A stretch of DNA of 64,000 nt, from positions 188,775-252,774 of the forward strand of contig NW_002060951.1 of NCBI RefSeq assembly GCF_000150275.1, in the 5' to 3' direction. Positions 10,600-50,709 of this stretch are shown piece after piece. Each line of letters begins with the position of its first letter. The first letter of the stretch is position 1. This DNA comes from Trichoplax adhaerens. Its lineage: Eukaryota; Animalia; Placozoa. A program made the position numbers and the translations under genes. The notes beneath the pieces are model-generated. The model saw only the letters and a list, made by a program, of their open reading frames with translations, searched no databases and had not been told where the DNA came from.

Positions 10600-13500
10600 T
10601 TAATGATTTTGTACCACGTTAGGACGACAGGAGATAAAATATAAAGCATTATCTAACAAGTATTCGTCCCAAGTTAGTATCCTAGAAAAATTAGTTGAAG
10701 AGAAATCAATGTTAATAAATAATTACAGTTAGGATGGTATAATACCATCAAGGGGAATGACCGATTCCTCGGATTGACCGTAACAGTAAAACATTAATTT
10801 TATCATCATTTGACAAGAATAAGAAATCAGATGCTCGAACTTAACATAATTAGAGCACTCGAAAATAATTTTATCATGCATGACGTAGAATAGTGCACTA
10901 TTGATGCTAGAGGTCAAAATAGATACGTAACTCAGATATCAGGATATGGTTAGCTCATTATTCTTTGGTTGGTAGAGATAATGTCTATGTAAATACTACA
11001 ACTGTTACCATGCTGGGATACATATAATTATAGATGGTCCGCTGTAAACTTTGTTACTAATAATTTGAATAATCGCAAAATAAGGTGTAATGTTATCATG
11101 CTGATTGAAGCTGTATATATACTATAAAGAGTATAAAAAGTAGACAACTGTAGATTATTTAGTAGTTCTGTCTATGAGTCTTTGTAGTGGTTGTATTCGA
11201 GCTAAAGTAGAGCTATTTGTAGATTATCTTACTACAAAGGTCTAATAAAGTTCTAATTTTCAACAAATATTGGAATTTCATGAGCGGTTTTTATCACAAT
11301 ATGTTTATAATATTTGAAGATCTTAATGGAAAATAATCAATAATGAGAATATTAAAACAGTTTTCATTAAGCTGAAAACTAGAATAACTCTAGAAATGAT
11401 TCTAAAAGTAATAAATAATAGTTAAAATCAACCACAATAGATACAAATAAGTAATTAAAATTCTTACCCATTTCTATCAGAATCACCCAGCATCAAGTAA
11501 TGAATATGATATTCAACATGGCCGGGTAACTCCTGCTCCACCTTATCTACATTCCTAAATGATCATATCATGGTATAGGATCAGAATTTTAGTTGATATT
11601 AAATTATATAAAATGATCGAGACAGATTTACCAGTATTGCTTTCCTAATAGTTTAGAAAACCAATGTGAGAAAGTCCTTTTAGCTTCAACAACTGTAATG
11701 ACACCATCTTTATCGAGATCAATGGTTTGGAATGCATCTCGGGCACGCTCAACTTCTCGATTAGTTAACATGGATAGCAAGAATTCCTAATATTTATCCA
11801 AAAAAGACATTTGTAATCATTGATAAACAATGGAACTATAAATAGACGACGTTATATTAATGATTACCAGAACTAGAAATCTCATATTGTCTTATGGACT
11901 AACCTTATCTCGTTTTGCTAATTTCTTAACAGCTTCAGCATTAAGAAATTCCCACCAATCCAAAGTACCAGATGAATTCTTATCCATCAATCGAAACTAT
12001 AATAAATTATTAGCAAGACGAATCTAATTATCTGCAATCAAACAAGCAAACTAAAATAATTGAAACTTTATACGTGTATCAACAATCCATGAAGTAGAAA
12101 GTAGTAGCATTTACGGATTTAACCAATTCTCTAATTGATGGGATTTACTGTAAAAGCTGTAAAACTTGAATTATATTGCTTTTTAAGCCTCTTCTACATT
12201 ACTATTTATTTTACTTAATAGTGAATTACTTTTTCCTGATGATATTTCTCTTCTACTTCTGTCCATTTCTCTCTTTCTTTCTCGTATTGCGCTTTAGTTG
12301 CTTTCATATACTCTTCCAAAGTTACCGTGGAGTCTAGTTTATTGAGCATTAATTGAGAACAGTCTCAAATCTGTCTGATAATCTATACAAGCGCTTTAAC
12401 TTTGAAATACCTTGATCAATATCCAGTTGCTGAAAGTGATCAATCAATTCCTGCATCTCATCCTCTTCAAGCAAGAAATGGATATTCTCCTAAAGAGGAA
12501 TTTTTGATTGAAAATAGCTCAAAAATAAATTTAATTAGGGGAGTAAAAATAACCAATGGTGCCAAATTTTATCCTTCCTGTCTAGAAAAACTTGATAACT
12601 AATAACTGATCGAGAATTAAGAGACATTATAAAACTTACACATTTCGGACAACTCCAGCGAAAATTTTTGGCATTATATAATAATTCTGGAGTAGCTCCT
12701 TCTTTGCATTCTCCTAGTTTATTTAAGCATTGTTCGTGATAGACTCTTGTACATATCCGACACGGATATAATTCACTGTTGGCAACATTGTACACATTGC
12801 ATACGGCACATGAAGTATCTGCTAGAACCTATATCACATTTTTCATAAATAGGTGAGATAGATACCATAAAGCAGCGTTTCTGCAGACGATCATTTTCTA
12901 AAGTCAATTAATACAACATAGTGGACACTAGCGATCACACTANNNNNNNNNNNNNNNNNNNNNNNNNNNNNNNNNNNNNNNNNNNNNNNNNNCGATTATG
13001 TATGTCAAATTAGCTTTTGGAAGCTCAGTAGTAACACCGTGATCTAAGCATAAATCAAATGTGCCAATTTTTAATGATTTCTTCCTAGATAGCATGGCAG
13101 CCCTTAAATCATCGTCGAGAGTTGGATCATTTGCTTTCAGCCTAGCCCAAGCTTGATTAGAATCTTGATAAGTTACTTTATCGCCATTACTAGAATCGCG
13201 ATCGTTACCGTTATGATTACCGGCATCTAACAAATATCATGAACATAATTGCTGTATTAGTTTTACCATTTTTCTCATTAAAGTATCTTATCCGCGTTAC
13301 AAATTTATCAAATATCTCGGCAATTATTTTAAATTATACCACTATAGAAACTATTTAAACGTGATATATTAATTACATCGTTTCCATCAGCGAAATAGAT
13401 CATTCAGATTTCAAGTTATTAAACAACTTTTAATATTTAAATCGTTACTGGTACGACTCAAAGTATTTACGAATATCGTCATCTACAAGTAATATTATTA

Positions 13501-13980
13501 TTTCTATTGCCATCGGCATCAAGGCGTCAAGTGCAAATTATCAAACATCTCTCTATTTCAATTAGTATTACTAGAAAAGCTCTCGTATATTAGATTAGTG
13601 TTACTAATTTTCTTATCACCATAAATCATAAATTTCGCAAATTATTAAATATCTATATGACAGTTTCAAGCTATGCAGTAAGAATTTTTTAGATAGATCA
13701 CCCCAGCTTGTTTTTATCGTCATTAAAGATGATCAAACTCATAAGCAATTACAATATTTCGAAATGTAGTATTAACAGCAAGGCAGCCAAAACTGTTACA
13801 TAACTTGCCTTGATGAACATTCTCATCATGATGAGGTAAATGATCGTTATTTTCTTTGTCTTCTTCGCCATTGACTGGTAATTTACGATGAGATCCGCTA
13901 TTCTTCATATTGTTGGTCGCAACTGCAGTAGTAGCAGCCTGTACCATTTTATTGCGATTACGACCAAAAACTATTCCCAT
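10600..13980 (-). CDS. PHF24: PHF24/GINIP-like protein (N-myristoylation motif, PHD finger, four EF-hands); exons 13980-13809, 13226-? (3' end unresolved, next to gap), 12828-12640, 12489-12411, 12333-12230, 11996-11904, 11786-11632, 11554-11468, 10681-10600
   Basis: N-terminus MGIVFGR..KMVQAATTAVA; PHD CAVCNV..LYPCRICTRVYHEQCL..WSCPKC followed by ENIHFLLEEDEM; LLSMLTNREVERARDAF; HWF; terminal LTWDEYLLDNALYFISCRPN. All are colinear with PHF24 as I recall it. Exons 3-9 are phase-consistent up to TAA at 10600-10602. Confidence 0.85.
10880..11298 (+). mobile_element. Diverged LTR-like repeat family C, copy 1, in the last intron of the PHF24-like gene (5' boundary uncertain)
   Basis: Colinear similarity to about 40400-40804 (shared AGGATATGGTTAGCTCATTAT, GCTGTAAA, GAGTATAAA, GTTCTAATTTTC, TTTTATCAC end); TATA-like motif followed by AATAAA; no clean TSD. 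Confidence 0.55.
12943..12992. other. Assembly gap (50 N)
   Basis: Run of N inside the PHF24-like gene. Confidence 1.
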
Positions 13981-16900
13981 CTTTATGTTCAATCGACTTA
14001 CAACTAGAATGATGAGCTGTAATTACTGTATAAATTAGTATATCAAAAAGTACTCTAAATCAAGGGATTTTGAAATCGAAAAGAGTTAATCCAAGTGAAA
14101 AGCAGGAAGTTAAATCTGAGGGTGTTCTTTTCAATATTTAAAAATATCAGCGGGACAATAACCTAGTTATTGAAAAATAAAAAAAAATTGATATCAACAT
14201 CTTGTCAATGAAGCATTTTTCCCCTATTCTTTCATGGCAAATAAAATATAAAATATTTTCATTCCATTCACAATATCATTGTGTGTTTGCGCAGTAACTA
14301 CATTTTTGGGTGTCTACTTGTAACTAATACCGTAGTAATTTATGCTCTTATACAGAGTTAGAAGTCAATTCATTATATTATATCAGGATAAAACCATTAG
14401 TAAATAGACTAGGTCGAATATTCGCCTAGCCTATATTGCTCTACATGCCTGTATTACTTTTGAGAAGAATAGACGGCAAATGTCAGACGCAGTTAATACC
14501 ATTTAAAATGCTATCGATCAAAGTCATGAAAATTATTCACACATCGCACCGACTATAACTAGAAATACAGTATACTATTGACGATTATAAAAGAAAAATT
14601 ATAACTTGATTAAAGTACAAACTAATTATTTAGTTTTCAGATATCAAGTTTACACGTAATACTAGACAAATCGATTGTTTCAAATAGAATTGTAAATGCC
14701 TGATTATCGTCATAGCACTGTATTGTATTTACAAAGTCTAATATCTGTTGAACGATGAAAATTCGTTTTACATTTTAAGTAATTACAGTAATATTGCAGC
14801 GTAATGTATCCGAAATGCGCGTCAACATATATATGATGTCATGGTAATGATAGCTGATTAAATAACTTATTAAATCTGTATTGATACTCAGTTCAGTAAT
14901 AAATAGCAGAGGAGTTTATAAGATGGATAAATTAATAATTTATGTGCTCCATGTTGAATTTTCAGTAAATGTTTCAAATAGGCATGAAAAAATTATAGGA
15001 ATATAGCAATTAATCTATACAAATTTTTCATTATAATTGAAATTTACACACAGGAGGATTATATAAATAAATATACTAATGTTATTAGAATAAAAATATT
15101 ATTTGAGTAAAATTTCTTTAAGACGGTAAAATAAACGTTGGAAAAATTGGGGGAATATTATAGGTTAAATAAAATCCTATATTATACTGCTACAAGTTTA
15201 TAATAATGAGTAAGAGAGCCTTTGAACTATAGTAATTAGCTAGCATGAATTTTCCTCTAAAGTTGAGAACAGAAGGAGGATTATACAAGAAAACAATAAG
15301 GCAAATCAAATCCTATTTAAGGTATGTAACAAATATGTAGCAGACGTGAGAAAATTATTAAAGTCGAAATACCGTCATTAATTCAAGCAGATTTCCAGTA
15401 ACACAATTAATTGACGTAGAAAGATTTAGGGATACAGTAAGCTCAACCTAATCATATTCATAATATACCAGTCGGCAATAATGATACCATATTAATGACA
15501 TCCGATTTAATGGTCTATTTTAACTCTTGTAGAATTTGTGTTCAAGTAATAAATAGATAAGAAAGTACTACTCCAATACTGCAAAATGAAATCAAAAATT
15601 ACTTAATTTATAAAAATTATAAATTGTGATTGAATCTAATTTCAAAAGTGTATAATCATGATCGTTCAAATACGGCTACAGTATGTTATTTCTCACTCAG
15701 AATACGTTTCTTAAAATATAATAAAATGCGTATATTATATACAAGCTATTTACATATATTTATTATAATTAAATGACACTAATACTTACCGTAGGTAAAA
15801 TGTCCTGTCTTCAATAACTAATAATTAAGAAGAAAATTATGCTATACTATTTCTGGTATAAATAGACTAATCCTATAATACTAACGTTTTTCCATTACTG
15901 TGTATCTATGGATTTTGTAGGATATTGTATCAATGTAATGTCAGCATTTTATGATCTATTGCGCTATACAATAATAATATTACTTGCAAGTACTTTATCT
16001 AAATTATACATAACAGTCGAAGAGGAGAATGTAGTATGTAAGGCTATAAACTGAGACATAATTATTGTTAGCACAACTTGAAACTTTTACACACCTATAA
16101 ACGATGCTGTTACGAAGGACAGCTCTCCTAATAAAACACAGGATTAGAGAAATTCTGAGTTGTTTTCTCGCTACCCTAACAGTAATTCTGCATTTAGCGA
16201 TTATTAATCTACTCAATTCTGAATGGTTAATCTATTTCAAAGCCATGGTCTACTGCATGATTGATTTTTATTAGCAGTACATAATATCTGCAATTATATT
16301 ACTAAATAACTTACGTCACTTATGTATTTATCCAAAATTTACTATCAAGACATTAAGACTGGGTGCGCCTTCAAAGCTATAATAAACTAATTATTTTTCT
16401 TTTCTTACAGCTAAAATTAGTCGTATTTAGAAGACTGCAAGTTTCGTCATTCTCATGATATGTCTCTGCAATTTCTTTAAATGATAAAATGGGAAGAATA
16501 AAATAAAATAATTCCCTTAATAACGACTGAAATAGTCAGCAAAATATCGTAATAATAACATATTGGCAAGGTCTAAAAAATTTTATATTATTTAAATTCT
16601 TCGATAATTGTACCGTAACTAACTTTGTTCCTTTAAGTATCTTGCGAAAATTAGCTATGTTATTTTATTCACAAAACTATACACATAAAGCCAAGCAGGT
16701 GTTATTTTTAATATTAAGGGTCATTAAATGAATAATTAAACTATTCTACTAGCAAATGCTCTAAAGTGAATAGAATATGAGACTATACACGAATTATAAT
16801 GACAACTGACATCATAGTCTTTATTCCAATAAAATAGACATCCTTACTACCTAAATTTAATCGTCAATGATGTTATTTTGATATGATATTTCTATTTTAT

Positions 16901-43800: not shown

Positions 43801-45573
43801 TTTTCTAGAAATGCTCTGATCCTTCCTTCTACATGGGTATATGCTAATTTTTTTAGCTAAGTTACGGGTGGTACTTACGAGCCAATTTGCCTGAAACAAT
43901 TTATCACAGTAGAAATTTGCTTATAATTTATTAAGTAGCAAGCCATAATCGATAAGATGGCTTTACATTAGTTGATCTCTATATTGATGGGAAATAATAT
44001 AAATGGTATCTTCGTTTTATTGACGATTAAAATATCTTAGACAGATGTTTTTTGCCTGTCAACTAATTTTATACCCAATGTCGATAGAATATCGACGTAA
44101 GCTGTAGTATGCTTGCGATATTGATACCAGTTGCGCGCGTTATATTAGTATTATATTAGTTGCCGATAGTAGGCCGTGCAGTCACTCTTTTTTTAGAGTG
44201 TAGAAGTACTTCGTAGTTTTAAGTTTTTTTTATATTTTATCAGGTCTGTTAGTTATCAAAGTTGCCTTATTATTATTTTGAGCATCGTTTAATTGATTAA
44301 ATTGATTTAAACTTAAATATATTTTATATTAAATTGATCTGAACTTAAAAAAATTTTATATTAGTTGACGTTTGAAATATCTCAAGAAAATAAGTTGGTT
44401 AGATCAGTATTACAATTGTTTACGTGTAGAGATTAATAAGGACTAATACAATTATTAATTAATTGTTAATTTATTAGTTTTAATATTTTACTTTCATATA
44501 TTAACTAATTTCTTAATTAAAAGAATTGAATTACTGATAGGAAATCTTCAATCAAAAGATTATACTTCTTGGCAATTTTCTCTAACTGACTAGAAAAGAG
44601 CCAGAATTGTGTTTGCTACGTAGTAATTTGCACAAATTTACTAATTTGGTGTTGATATGATATTACTTTACAAACTGTAACTGGTATAGTATTTTACCGT
44701 AAAACTGAACAATAAAAACTGCAAAATTGATTTACGTCAACGTAAAATTCGTTGATTCTTTTCTCTTGTTTTGCCCGGCCGTTATATTTTATGTACCTAA
44801 AGATAATATAAGCTTCTTATTATTCATTCAGTGGCTGATCTTTAACTAGGCAAGTGGGGAATTTGCTGTCTTCACAGTGTTATAATCCTGTTGCTTTTTG
44901 CCGACGGATTGATAACTATGAATGTATGGATACGTGTATTTCAGCGGTAGGTAGTGTGAAATACTAGTATTTCAAAAGCTTTGAATAGCGTATTGAGTAC
45001 ATTTGCATGGACCTTATTTTTTTGCTGATGCCAGAATTTTTTCGAATTTAAACAGCATTCATTTGATTTTATACTTTTTCTATTGCCTATCTCGTAGCTT
45101 CTGCTTGATTTTGATTCATGATGAGTCCATTATCTAGCTGAAGGACATATGCAATTTACCCTTAAAGGTAATGATTTGGTTAGATTGAAAAGAGGCAATC
45201 TTTTCTACTGTATTTGTTTCGAAATATGACACGTATTCATCTGGATTTGCTAACTGCGAACTGCTATGCTCATCGTATCAGCTTGATTGAATTTAATATG
45301 CCGGCTTGCTGAGGTTGTTCAGAACCGCAAGTTCATAAGTAAACAATTTTATAAAATATGAATGTTTATAATAAATAACGGCGTAGAATAACGACCATAA
45401 GATAATTCTGATATGGTAAGACTAATCTTTTTATTATGGTAAAATCATACCGTTATTCAATATATCAGCGTTAGATGTTGTAGACTATGTTGATATCATT
45501 TCTAAGCGTAAAACTTTTAAAAATCATACGGAATACACTTTTGACCTAGATGAACATATTATTTGTCTGCACG

Positions 45574-45640
45574 ATACAAATGTTCCAGCTTAATTTATCT
45601 GCGTCAGCAGTTTCTAGTTAAGCCATCATACAATATGAAT
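45574..45640 (-). promoter_or_regulatory. SECIS element (type II) in the 3'UTR of the DEP-PH-GPx gene
   Basis: Minus strand reads UGUAU-AUGA-U-GGCUUAACUAG-AAA-CUGC-UGAC-GCAG-AUAAAUUAAGCU-GGA-ACA. This gives an AUGA/GA core, upper stem GGCUUAA/UUAAGCU, unpaired AAA about 11-12 nt above the core and an apical mini-stem CUGC/GCAG. It lies about 150 nt after the stop codon. Confidence 0.85.
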
Positions 45641-45788
45641 TTCATCTGAGATCATATCAAGCATTAGACGGTATGATTTTAATACGTTGAGAAAGCTGAT
45701 TACATGCTACTTCATTTTTCTAATAAGAAAAAAAATCTAGGTAAAAACATCTGTCAAATTAAGCCAATGTTTAGCGATGTGCCGGCTA

Positions 45789-48700
45789 CTATTTCAATAA
45801 CTCTTTAATAGTTTCTTCGATTTCCTGTAACAGTCATGTTATTTAAAAAGTTAACTATGTACATTGCAGAGACGAAAACGAGAAATTTGATTCTATTAAT
45901 ACTAATACAATAAATTAACTAATAATTAAAGTTATTGCATTTTTGATGCTTACTCATATTTAAACAAGCAAACAGATTTATGAAGGGATTATATTTACTC
46001 ACCAATGGCGCAGTTCTTGGTGAGTATCGTTGAACCGGTACGCCCTCTTTATTGCAGAGAAATTTACTAAAATTCCATTTAATAAAATTTCCTAATGTCC
46101 CTGGTAAACGAGATTTCAAATATTTATACAGAGGGAGAGCCTCTGATCCATTGACTTTAATTTTACTGAAGAGCTGGAATTCAGCGTTGAAATTTTTTTC
46201 TGCAAATTCTTTTATTTCTGCGTTAGACTTAGGTTCCTGATGAAATTATTAATGCAACAGTTATCCAATATTGCAATGTAATAAGAATCGCAATATAATT
46301 TAAATATCTATTTCAATGTTACGAATGATTGATTGTACGAAGACGAGGTTAGGGCTGACAATGAGCACATTTAAGCTAATGACATAATCGACATCACTAA
46401 ATCAATTTAAGGGATATTTTAATCAGTTCAGTGAAAATCTACTTCAAGTCAGGTACGATAGCAGCGAATGTAACATATGACAGTGCCTAGCATAGTACCA
46501 GGCATAGCATTAGTATCTCCGTATCTATAGTTTTACTAGAGCGAATGAGACTTATCAATTATAATTATTCTTAATGGATACAACCAATCATTAGCTTTTG
46601 TAATTCATACACATTGCGGTTAGTTCTATAGTATATATTTTTATAATTAAAAGGACTATGGTTGGCTGTGCCATATCAAACTAACATAACGTACAACATT
46701 TTGGAAGTAGTGAGGTTAATGTTTTCGGATGATTTCTGAAAAGTTACTAATTTGGCGCTTTAATACAGTACTATATGCTTAATTAATTCTACCAGGATTG
46801 ACTTACTTGATTTCCGAACTGGTTACAAGGGAAGCCCAGTATACGCAGTCCAGACTTCGCATACAGCACGTGCAGTTGCTGCAGTTGAGTGTAGTTCTTT
46901 TCCGTTAGCCCTCAAAAAGACGCTACATTCACGATTAGCGTTACATATCCTCTACATTGAAAATTAAAGCTCTAAATCAATACAAATCATGATACGTAAG
47001 TGATAATGTCATACAATCTTTTGCTCAATATACGTACTTATACTTCTCCAAGCTAATTTCATCACCGTCGATGGTATTGGCTTTAAATGGGTAAATATTT
47101 GGGGACTTCCCGATCTCTTCATTGATTTCCTATATTAGGGATAAGGGCATACCACTCATAATTAATTAATTGTTTATTAAGAAATGAATCAATTAATTAC
47201 CAGTTTCAATAAAAGTAATTATATTGTTAATAATTATAAGTTAGCCTTATAAAAAGTATTTTAACATTTAATTTCATCATTTCTAGAAAAATAAAAGACT
47301 ACTTACTTCTTTACTTCTACCTATTTTTACACCCATTGCTTCTAATTTCTTCATCCAAGCTAGCTGATCATTTTCATTTGGCACTAATAGCATCATATCT
47401 ATTATAACAATAATGCATATATAATGCATAAATGAGTTACGCACAAAATTTAATCTACTAGCGTTCATTACCTTAATCGATTTTATGATCAGGCAATAAT
47501 ATGTGCAGTTGTAACGTATTGAATACGTATTTATACTCAACGTATAGTATTACAGTATACTAGCGCAAACGCCATATACATACTGCTAATTCGCTTTCCG
47601 TTTTCAACATTACCTTGGTACTGACTTCCTTCATCGAATGTAATTTCTATGGCAGTGTCATCATTACTAGTTACTGAAGCAACGGTCATTTCTTTCAGAG
47701 GAAATGCCCGCTTCGGATACGGGTCCTAATCCAAAGTTTTAAGATATTCAGTATCTGTACAATAATCTCATGCTAATTTGTCTAGTAGTATATCATGGTA
47801 TCTTACCAATTCTGATCCATATTTGAAAAGAAATTCCTGAGATGGAGCGACAACATAAAAAGATCTTGAGTTCATAAACATGCCTTTTCGTTCCATATAC
47901 ATACTGTAAGATCCACATTCTCCGGTGACGGTTTTAGCAGATGGCCCCGTATTACTATTCGGAGGGTCTGGATATGGATACATTAAACAAAATTTTAGTG
48001 TGGAGTATTGTANNNNNNNNNNNNNNNNNNNNNNNNNNNNNNNNNNNNNNNNNNNNNNNNNNNNNNNNNNNNNNNNNNNNNNNNNNNNNNNNNNNNNNNN
48101 NNNNNNNNNNNNNNNNNNNNNNNNNNNNNNNNNNNNNNNNNNNNNNNNNNNNNNNNNNNNNNNNNNNNNNNNNNNNNNNNNNNNNNNNNNNNNNNNNNNN
48201 NNNNNNNNNNNNNNNNNNNNNNNNNNNNNNNNNNNNNTAGCCGTCTTTGAAATTGTGATCATCGACGACGGGATGGATAATACCAGTGTCTAAGATTTGC
48301 TGAAATATATTGATGGCAAATGAACAATCAATTTCATAGGTAGGCATATTTTATAGAGTAAAATTATTAGCACAATTAATTGGTAGCACAATTATTTTAT
48401 AAATTTTAAGAGTAGCGTACAAATACGAATAAAAAGAATAGTAAATCCATTATTTTGTTGCATAGATTTGTAATGTCTTTGTGTTGTAATTTTTCCTACC
48501 TGGCCAACTTTGATAGCTTCTTTGCGATCATCCGCCAAGTTTTCTTTAACAAACCAATCAACTGCTTCACTACCTATTTTCATCGATTGAAGGTTTTATA
48601 GTTAACAGTAACCATAATATATTGTATGTATCTATTACGAGAACATTTTATTGTTCAAAGATTATGTTACTGTATACGTTGCAATGATACAAAAGAGTTC

Positions 48701-49031
48701 TGTCTAATTGCGAAAGATATTTCCGTAATAATTCACCTATAAAACATTTGGCGTATGTTCTGAAATGGTAGATCCTGTCTTTGATAGAAATACCACTGGA
48801 TCCCCTAAGACGTTTAGCAATGTCTTCAGCCTGTATGCATTCATTGTAAAAAATTTTGAACGTGATTATGTTCGTTAGTACTTAAATTAATAACATATAT
48901 TAGTGACGATACAGTACTAAGCAATCGTCATTTGATGTAAAAATGGATTACTATAATAGTTATAGATTACAAATTGTACTTAATTAGCGGCTGAATACCT
49001 GTTCAACACTTAAGGTACAGGATGAAGACAT
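45789..49031 (-). CDS. DEP domain + PH-like domain + GPx4/PHGPx-like glutathione peroxidase fusion selenoprotein; exons 49031-48999, 48830-48737, 48573-48500, 48299-(gap), about 47967-47807, 47725-47614, 47398-47307, 47129-47038, 46951-46807, 46236-46003, 45824-45789
   Basis: DEP: [56 protein letters not shown]-like: [44 protein letters not shown]. GPx: [16 protein letters not shown](TGA 46914-46912)-[30 protein letters not shown]. The PH-to-GPx junctions are canonical GT-AG and in frame. The DEP-to-PH link spans a 225-N gap. Confidence 0.85.
48013..48237. other. Assembly gap (225 N)
   Basis: Run of N interrupting the end of the DEP domain exon. Confidence 1.
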
Positions 49032-50709
49032 TTTGCTAATCTTTCTTACAGACGAAGAAAGGAAACGCAACAATTTGACAGAAGATGAGATTTTCTAATC
49101 TCTAGTACCGTTTTAAGGAGAATGTTAAAATATAAGTTATACGCATGAGTATTTCTATGTAAAAATTTACCCTGTAATGTAACTGCAAAACATTTACGAA
49201 TTAATCAATTATTTAATATGGTAATTATACAGTATTATAATTCATAATCATATATATATATACACTGTACATAGAATATATATAATCGATCTTGCAGATA
49301 ATGTTGTTAATATTACTAATGACCTCTTTCGCGAGTCATGACCCCTAGAGACCTGCCCACCAAGAAGTCATGATGACGAATAGGTACTGTACATTTAGGG
49401 TACCAGTGATACGAGTAGAACACAGCACTCTAAGTATACTACCGTACAGTATATAGCACTGTCCTGTATTGGGGGCTATATAGCACCGCAACGTCTGTCG
49501 CACAAAGCATACGGTATATCAATGCAGGACCATACAATGATCATGCGTTCTCGTGTAATATTAGAATTAGGGAAAATAAAATAAAATAAATTAAATTAAG
49601 ATTAAAAATTTGATTTTAAATCGATAGTGTATGCCCTTAATTTAGGTTCAGCGTGTACTTCATTATGGGGCTACTAAGAAAGGAATAGTGATAGTATCAC
49701 TGCCGTACATTTGATTTGACCTAAAATTTTTGTGCTAGCTACTAATGACTTGTATGAGGTTAAAACTTGTTCCAAGAAAATCGCTGACTCACTCGTGTCC
49801 TTTCTACCATACAATCGTGCTAGCATGTCAGTATTTCATTTCGTATTTTAGGTTGCAATATTTCTTATGGTATTAAGTTCCAATAGCCACTTGTGAAATA
49901 TGACAGAATGTTGTATTATAAACACTACATTACTATACAGTATAAGAATGAGTAGAATGGATAATAGTCACAACACTACAGTACTGTACTCCAGTATTGT
50001 TTTTACATCACTCTTAACACTCTTAAGAAGGTTTATATAATTGGTAACTCTTTTTAAGATTCGTAGATACATATACTGTACTGTATACTAGTGTAATTAC
50101 TAGCGAAGGCAATTCGCTCTGTGAAAACCAAAGTGCAGGTTTCGTCGTGGGTTATTAAGGTAAAATACTTTTAACGGTCCCTGGTTTTGCATGTGATTAT
50201 TATTCTTAGGTTAAATAATAATTAATCATTATTTATAATTATTAGTACTTACTGCACAAAAGTGTTTATGTTGATTTCCAAGCTTCTAATCTGCTTGTCT
50301 GAAAGCCACGACACTGGTTTCAATCCTGAAATATCAGTGCGACACGCTTAAAAGATTCTGACGTTAGTATGCGCATGTGTGCACGGTATGGTTTTGCACA
50401 GTACAGTATGATGAACTGTAAATTACAGTACAGTCTCTGCAATTTAAAGTGTCACCTCAGTCCGGTTTGCACTGTGGCACTGTGGCAGTTCTGTTCAAAC
50501 GACTTTAGGTACTGTACTGTACACTGTACTGTACTGTACTGTACAGTGCACAGTACAGCGGTAGCCGTAAAGTACAGTACAGTACTGTACAGTACTTGCA
50601 AAGACAACCACTACCGACTGCCGATCAGTGATTAATACAGTACTGTACTGTACTATTAAGGGTACTATTTAACTGGCGTGGTGAGCCTTATACTGTACTG
50701 TACACTGTA

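Follow-up and report, generated by a model that had tools for sequence, protein, structure and literature searches.

Glutathione peroxidases (GPx) are almost always single-domain proteins. Mammalian GPX4 has alternative first exons and start codons, which provide a mitochondrial leader or a nuclear Arg-rich exon; how it is placed on membranes is under active study in ferroptosis research. GPx4-type enzymes also oxidise protein thiols, and yeast Orp1/Gpx3 captures peroxide and passes the oxidation to Yap1. DEP domains, where they are known, dock on acidic lipids, on the tails of G-protein-coupled receptors (GPCRs) or on SNARE-like anchors. Here, we describe a gene of the placozoan Trichoplax adhaerens in which a DEP domain, a PH-like domain and a GPx4-type selenocysteine (Sec) enzyme stand in one frame of a single gene with one dominant mRNA. 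The gene lies in a stretch of 64,000 nucleotides (nt) of RefSeq assembly GCF_000150275.1 (contig NW_002060951.1, positions 188,775 to 252,774 of the forward strand), which we call the window and by which positions are numbered unless stated otherwise. An earlier interpretation of the window, made from its letters and open reading frames (ORFs) and referred to here as the sequence-only reading, had proposed the fusion and a function for it.

The fusion gene is on the minus strand, from about 50336 to 45428, and has 12 exons, of which one belongs to the 5' untranslated region (UTR) and 11 are coding (Table 1). Positions 45400-49200 were compared with the contigs of a DNA run (X1) and of three RNA-type runs (X16, X18 and X19) that come from three studies; the RNA contigs are Logan assemblies, which are not single molecules and from which rare variants are dropped. 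All predicted introns (81-570 nt) were seen in spliced RNA contigs as joints reading CT..AC on the plus strand, which equals GT..AG on the gene strand, and AG/GT borders were found at all 11 coding exons by sequence reading and a scripted border check. A single X18 contig of 1676 nt runs unbroken from 49101 to 45428 with 84 further letters at its 5' end, and so covers the 5'UTR through the 3'UTR. The joint between the PH-like and the GPx part (47307/47129; 47128/47306) is present in X16, X18 and X19. The assembly gap inside the gene is crossed by 25 letters, the same in all three RNA runs (ATCTTCTTTAAAGCGATAAAATAAG, plus strand), between 48238 and 47968; the bridged protein reads ...FKDG-YLFYRFKED-DPPNS..., stays in frame and matches the expected end of the DEP domain. 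RNA thus spans both places at which the sequence-only reading had looked to transcripts, the 47307/47129 junction and the 48013-48237 gap, and its central claim of three domains in one frame is borne out by one transcript with all joints seen in three RNA runs.

With the bridging letters included, the coding sequence is 1161 nt long and encodes 386 amino acids (aa), with Sec at residue 262 and the first GPx exon beginning at residue 219. The DEP domain occupies about aa 12-93, the PH-like domain about aa 115-210 (roughly 100 aa) and the GPx domain about aa 229-386, preceded by a linker of about 18 aa. In the known mRNA no other ATG precedes the start codon at 49031, and its frame is closed by a TAG further upstream. 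The leader exon is based on the 84-nt loose 5' end of the X18 contig, which has a unique match at 50253-50282. Dense short repeat arrays of the TACAG/TACTG type fill window positions 50380-50700, directly upstream of the leader exon, in the presumed promoter region. The first GPx exon (exon 8, from 47129) was said to lack an ATG and to be entered in phase 0 from exon 7, and both the sequence and the RNA joint agree: there is no in-frame ATG, an in-frame TAG stands directly upstream in the intron, read-through from exon 7 into intron 7 meets a stop after nine codons, and the 177-nt intron before exon 8 yielded no mini-exon with an ATG start and a donor. Nine coding differences were seen among the runs, and six of these are synonymous. 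The three non-synonymous ones (window positions 47351, 47365 and 46857) are K204E and Q199L in the region of the PH-like helix (X16) and K281E in the GPx domain (X19).

The GPx domain is of the GPx4 type. Against the GSHPx family PF00255 (cut-off 27 bits), exon 9 after the TGA scored 45.8 bits (positions 34-67) and exon 10 scored 42.8 bits (positions 68-108), and a scan of the GPx exons in the T. adhaerens genome itself gave 65.2 and 47 bits. The phospholipid hydroperoxide glutathione peroxidase (PHGPx) of Schistosoma, 169 aa long, is matched without gaps by exon 8 (residues 10-29), exon 9 (residues 44-78) and exon 10 (residues 79-155), and human GPX4 is matched equally well; the alignment of exon 10 to 2wgr/2v1m and to GPX4 chains is gapless over 77-78 aa (E 1e-26 to 1e-20), and GPx1-, 2-, 3- and 6-type chains give a partial match only. 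From the alpha3 region to the KWNF strand there is no oligomerisation loop, which places the domain in the monomeric PHGPx class. The catalytic tetrad U/Q/W/N, described as intact by the sequence-only reading, is indeed complete in the alignment to GPX4 and 2wgr: a TGA stands at the active site (NVASF-U-G), the final Gln of exon 9 corresponds to Gln81 of GPX4, and the Trp and Asn of KWNFSKF are placed as in 2wgr. Where thioredoxin-type GPx enzymes carry their resolving Cys, the alignment reads Ala, as in GPX4; without this residue, the domain does not belong to the thioredoxin-type 2-Cys GPx enzymes.

In the contigs of the three RNA runs the TGA at 46912-46914 shows no change, and GPx homology runs on for 124 aa past it; the product is a predicted selenoprotein, with Sec262 as its candidate active-site residue. 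The only match of the selenocysteine insertion sequence (SECIS) type in the region lies at 45573-45637, 152 nt past the stop codon. It is a hairpin with an AUGA core, AAA in the apical region, a 3' GA and a small extra stem, which gives it the look of a type II element; it folds, and is no more stable than shuffled sequences (z -0.66).

Domain searches of the spliced model were made exon by exon and not on the joined protein. For the DEP domain (Pfam PF00610), exon 2 matched positions 1-19 with 15.4 bits, exon 3 positions 21-44 with 20.4 bits and exon 4 positions 46-65 with 17.3 bits. These matches are collinear and sum to 53 bits, and the closest PDB relatives of exon 3 are the DEP domains of DEPTOR; although no single exon passes the cut-off of 32.7 bits, we regard the predicted DEP domain as present. 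For the segment that follows, hhalign against a PH profile compiled from six such domains encoded in the same genome placed exons 5, 6 and 7 on columns 5-14, 38-59 and 78-93 in the correct order (P 0.011, 0.046 and 0.0078), the match of exon 7 taking in the invariant Trp of the C-terminal helix. The middle domain may, with moderate confidence, be called PH-like on this profile alignment. Neither the DEP nor the PH-like exons have paralogues elsewhere in the T. adhaerens genome, and an origin by recent duplication of a pleckstrin-like gene is therefore unsupported. A word-index search that used the gap-spanning ORF as a carrier for exon 5 returned no candidate, and nothing usable came from an ESM Atlas feature search with this exon. 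Chance-level matches of exons 5-7 to a glyoxalase (Pfam), a xylanase and an outer-membrane protein were dismissed, as was a lysine-riboswitch match in Rfam (15.7 bits) inside exon 6.

Mammalian GPX4 and S. mansoni PHGPx (PDB 2v1m/2wgr) share with the fusion the monomer-type fold, the lack of an oligomerisation loop, the Sec/Gln/Trp/Asn tetrad, the lack of a resolving Cys and, as a candidate in the fusion gene, a SECIS in the 3'UTR. In mammalian GPX4, as here, splicing adds the N-terminal part to the exon in which the catalytic core begins. However, this part comprises about 220 aa of predicted folded signalling-type domains in T. adhaerens, whereas in mammalian GPX4 it is a short targeting peptide or an Arg-rich tail, and the DEP/PH form is apparently the dominant and perhaps the only one, unlike the mitochondrial, cytosolic and sperm-nuclear isoforms of mammalian GPX4. 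The succession of DEP, short linker and PH-type domain is that of the C-terminal two thirds of pleckstrin (PH-DEP-PH), a likeness of architecture only: the fusion protein has no N-terminal PH domain, shows no detectable similarity to pleckstrin beyond the DEP family level and is joined to an enzyme. The full PH-DEP-PH order is absent, with the ORF opening 11 codons before the DEP-bearing exon and an in-frame stop upstream. Yeast Orp1/Gpx3 (HYR1), a PDB relative of the GPx exons, likewise ties a GPx4-like fold to signalling, but it is Cys-based, has a resolving Cys and consists of a single domain, whereas the T. adhaerens protein is Sec-based and joined to other domains.

The normal state of GPx4 loci is shown by the one related genomic locus compared, on an unrelated eukaryotic contig (L011), which carries a stand-alone GPx4 whose GPx exons are 62-69% identical and whose intron positions differ. 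Its frame opens four codons before the fold, and the 8 kb upstream contain neither DEP nor PH exons. After its GPx4 gene (11300-15200), the same contig has tandemly repeated units of about 858 bp, each with one 56-aa ORF and a weak GPx-exon-like match.

A profile search of the T. adhaerens genome found two GPx loci, C1411 and C1406, both on the minus strand; C1406 is the fusion. The other, at about 5.379-5.381 Mb of C1411, is GPx1-type, with a long oligomerisation loop and TGA codons in frame, and has its own ATG and a possible presequence within the active-site exon. Given that there are just two GPx loci and the other is GPx1-type, the fusion is the only GPx4-type gene of the genome. The published T. 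adhaerens selenoproteome (Jiang et al. 2012, PMC3473315) lists two Sec-GPx genes, on scaffold_4 (-) and scaffold_9 (-). If contigs are numbered in reverse size order, the paired loci and strands make the fusion locus most likely Ta.Gpx_b on scaffold_9 (-) of that study. The GPx selenoprotein gene itself is thus most likely already known (Ta.Gpx_b, PMC3473315). Its entry there lists the GPx alone, with DEP, PH or a fusion nowhere in the text or supplement: a selenoprotein gene was catalogued as a plain GPx without notice of its N-terminal two thirds. Full-text literature searches found no description of a DEP- or PH-linked glutathione peroxidase, in line with the proposal that the architecture was undescribed. 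The predicted combination of DEP, PH-like and GPx domains thus appears to be new for any glutathione peroxidase, and has so far been seen only in near-identical strains. The protein database holds the T. adhaerens genome only as exon-sized ORFs (such as P0002, 76 aa), and for that reason its silence on a fused protein is uninformative. These single-exon pieces fit the guess that automated annotation would fragment the gene; automatic gene models fail at this locus because the assembly gap and the UGA both defeat them.

We consider it probable that this one gene, through one dominant mRNA, yields one 386-aa predicted selenoprotein in which a DEP and PH-like module tethers a GPx4-type peroxidase. 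The GPx domain would work as GPX4 does, its Sec being oxidised by phospholipid or other hydroperoxides and re-reduced by glutathione or protein thiols. The N-terminal module would fill the place of the alternative first exons of mammalian GPX4 and would localise or tether the peroxidase, either to a membrane surface or to a DEP-binding partner; peroxide removal would then be local and not diffuse. As to function, the sequence-only reading had suggested a signal-recruitable peroxidase with local, ferroptosis-type control of lipid peroxides, as the enzyme may prove to be. A more far-reaching version, which we put forward only tentatively, is that the sole GPx4-type enzyme sits obligatorily on the DEP and PH-like module, so that control of membrane lipid peroxides would be hard-wired to a DEP docking site (acidic lipids, GPCR/G-protein complexes), or the protein would itself be a peroxide-to-signal relay. 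If the tethering is real, a naturally tethered GPX4 would be a testable model of localisation-dependent lipid-peroxide control and a natural experiment on how far GPX4 function is set by its place of anchoring, and it would bear on how peroxidases became linked to signalling in an early-branching animal.

Several results weigh against the tethered-peroxidase reading. The fusion is known so far from sequence and RNA. The sequences that supply the RNA evidence are all 95-99+% identical to the window, which means that the fusion has been seen within one species complex. For the PH-like domain, Pfam (E<=1) gave no PH match with exons 5-7, PDB sequence searches of exons 5, 6 and 7 were also blank, and the probability reported by hhalign was only 1-5% per exon. 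These exons are also not among the PF00169 matches in the T. adhaerens genome, and exon 5 had no homologue among 1.84 billion representative proteins searched exhaustively with phmmer, the sole match, a MAM-repeat protein, being spurious. Of the three domains that the sequence-only reading had proposed to check with Pfam, GSHPx was recovered above its cut-off and DEP as collinear matches that are each sub-threshold, but PH was not matched. Its statement that PH domains bind phosphoinositides should not be transferred to this protein: on sequence inspection, the basic beta1-beta2 signature K-Xn-(K/R)-X-R is incomplete in the PH-like segment, where the positions concerned hold just one Lys and one Arg. 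The SECIS that it placed in the 3'UTR stands as a hairpin with the AUGA, AAA and GA features, but the Rfam SECIS_1 match reaches only 21.9 bits (E 0.8), below the gathering score of 35. Finally, a minor GPx-only isoform is possible because the contigs drop rare variants.

This last point leads to an explanation in which the gene, like mammalian GPX4 with its alternative first exons and start codons, makes several N-terminal isoforms, and a short GPx-only form does the housekeeping, whether it comes from another first exon, from a promoter within intron 6 or from an AUG in exon 7. Exon 7 does contain in-frame Met codons some 20-30 aa before the GPx fold, and a low-depth X16 contig runs over intron 6 into exon 7 (47391-47597; depth 8.4 versus 577.7). 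However, unspliced pre-mRNA would account for that contig just as well, exon 8 shows neither an alternative joint nor a loose end in the contigs of the three RNA runs, and the main contigs of X16 and X18 pass the PH/GPx junction unbranched (the break in X19 falls inside exon 7); we therefore think such a division of labour unlikely. Much the same low probability attaches to the protein being a redox sensor or relay and not a detoxifier, in which the GPx4-type domain would oxidise a cysteine of the DEP/PH-like module or of a bound partner and so form a peroxide-gated signalling protein. The known oxidation of protein thiols by GPx4-type enzymes, the presence of HYR1/Orp1 among the PDB relatives of the GPx exons, the joining of the GPx to two signalling-type domains and the cysteines in the N-terminal module all fit a relay. 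But Sec and the full tetrad are kept, as is typical of high-turnover peroxidases, no partner is known, and bulk lipid-peroxide repair presumably depends on the fusion protein because it is the only GPx4-type gene.

The sub-threshold SECIS score, and evidence that so far is of sequence and RNA, would also suit a UGA that is mostly read as stop, which would leave a 261-aa DEP/PH-like protein with a GPx stub, or a degraded mRNA. This is very improbable in our view: a fully conserved GPx4 domain with intact Gln, Trp and Asn follows the TGA, two thirds of the coding differences between runs (6/9) are synonymous, the hairpin has its canonical features, and a SECIS-based screen lists the locus as a Sec-GPx (PMC3473315). 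There remains the question of whether chimeric contigs or mis-assembly at the gap could have joined two neighbouring genes, given that the Logan contigs are assemblies and that the gap lies inside the gene. We give this almost no credence: three runs of three studies agree on ten joints, each of them canonical GT-AG and in frame, and on the 25 letters across the gap, which encode just what was missing from the end of the DEP domain.

Table 1 Features of the DEP/PH-like/GPx fusion gene in the window.
Feature	Position	Strand	Basis and remarks
Non-coding 5'UTR leader exon	50253..50336	-	donor GTAAGT from 50252; 5' end undefined; X18 contig
Exon 1: 5'UTR (49101-49032) and start codon 49031 (MSSSC...)	48999..49101; coding 49031-48999	-	RNA contigs
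Exon 2: first part of DEP	48737..48830	-	PF00610 positions 1-19; RNA joints
Exon 3: middle part of DEP	48500..48573	-	PF00610 positions 21-44; best PDB match DEPTOR DEP; RNA joints
Exon 4: third part of DEP, continuing about 26 nt into the gap	48238..48299	-	PF00610 positions 46-65; RNA bridge
Assembly gap, 225 N, covering the end of exon 4 (YLFYRFKED) and the next intron	48013..48237	.	
Exon 5: linker and N-terminal strands of PH-like domain	47807..47967	-	RNA joints; weak hhalign, PH columns 5-14
Exon 6: middle of PH-like domain	47614..47725	-	RNA joints; weak hhalign, PH columns 38-59
Exon 7: last strand and C-terminal helix of PH-like domain (...LAWMKKLEA...), linker; ends in phase 0	47307..47398	-	RNA joints; hhalign, PH columns 78-93
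Exon 8: linker and first GPx strands	47038..47129	-	joint 47128/47306 in X16, X18, X19; S. mansoni PHGPx residues 10-29
Exon 9: GPx active site, Sec TGA 46912-46914, catalytic Gln as last codon	46807..46951	-	PF00255 positions 34-67; best PDB match human GPX4
Exon 10: C-terminal half of GPx, catalytic Trp and Asn (KWNFSKF)	46003..46236	-	PF00255 positions 68-108; 77-aa alignment
Exon 11: last 11 codons, stop TAG 45789-45791 and 3'UTR	45428..45824; coding 45824-45789	-	RNA contigs reach at least 45428
SECIS-like hairpin	45573..45637	-	Rfam SECIS_1 match and fold

Two intronic stretches of the fusion gene, 47225-47245 in intron 7 and 48392-48409 in intron 3, match a 6280-nt contig in the DNA run X1 and in X16 and have the look of a dispersed repeat. 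The window contains a second assembly gap, 50 N at 12943-12992, far from the fusion gene.

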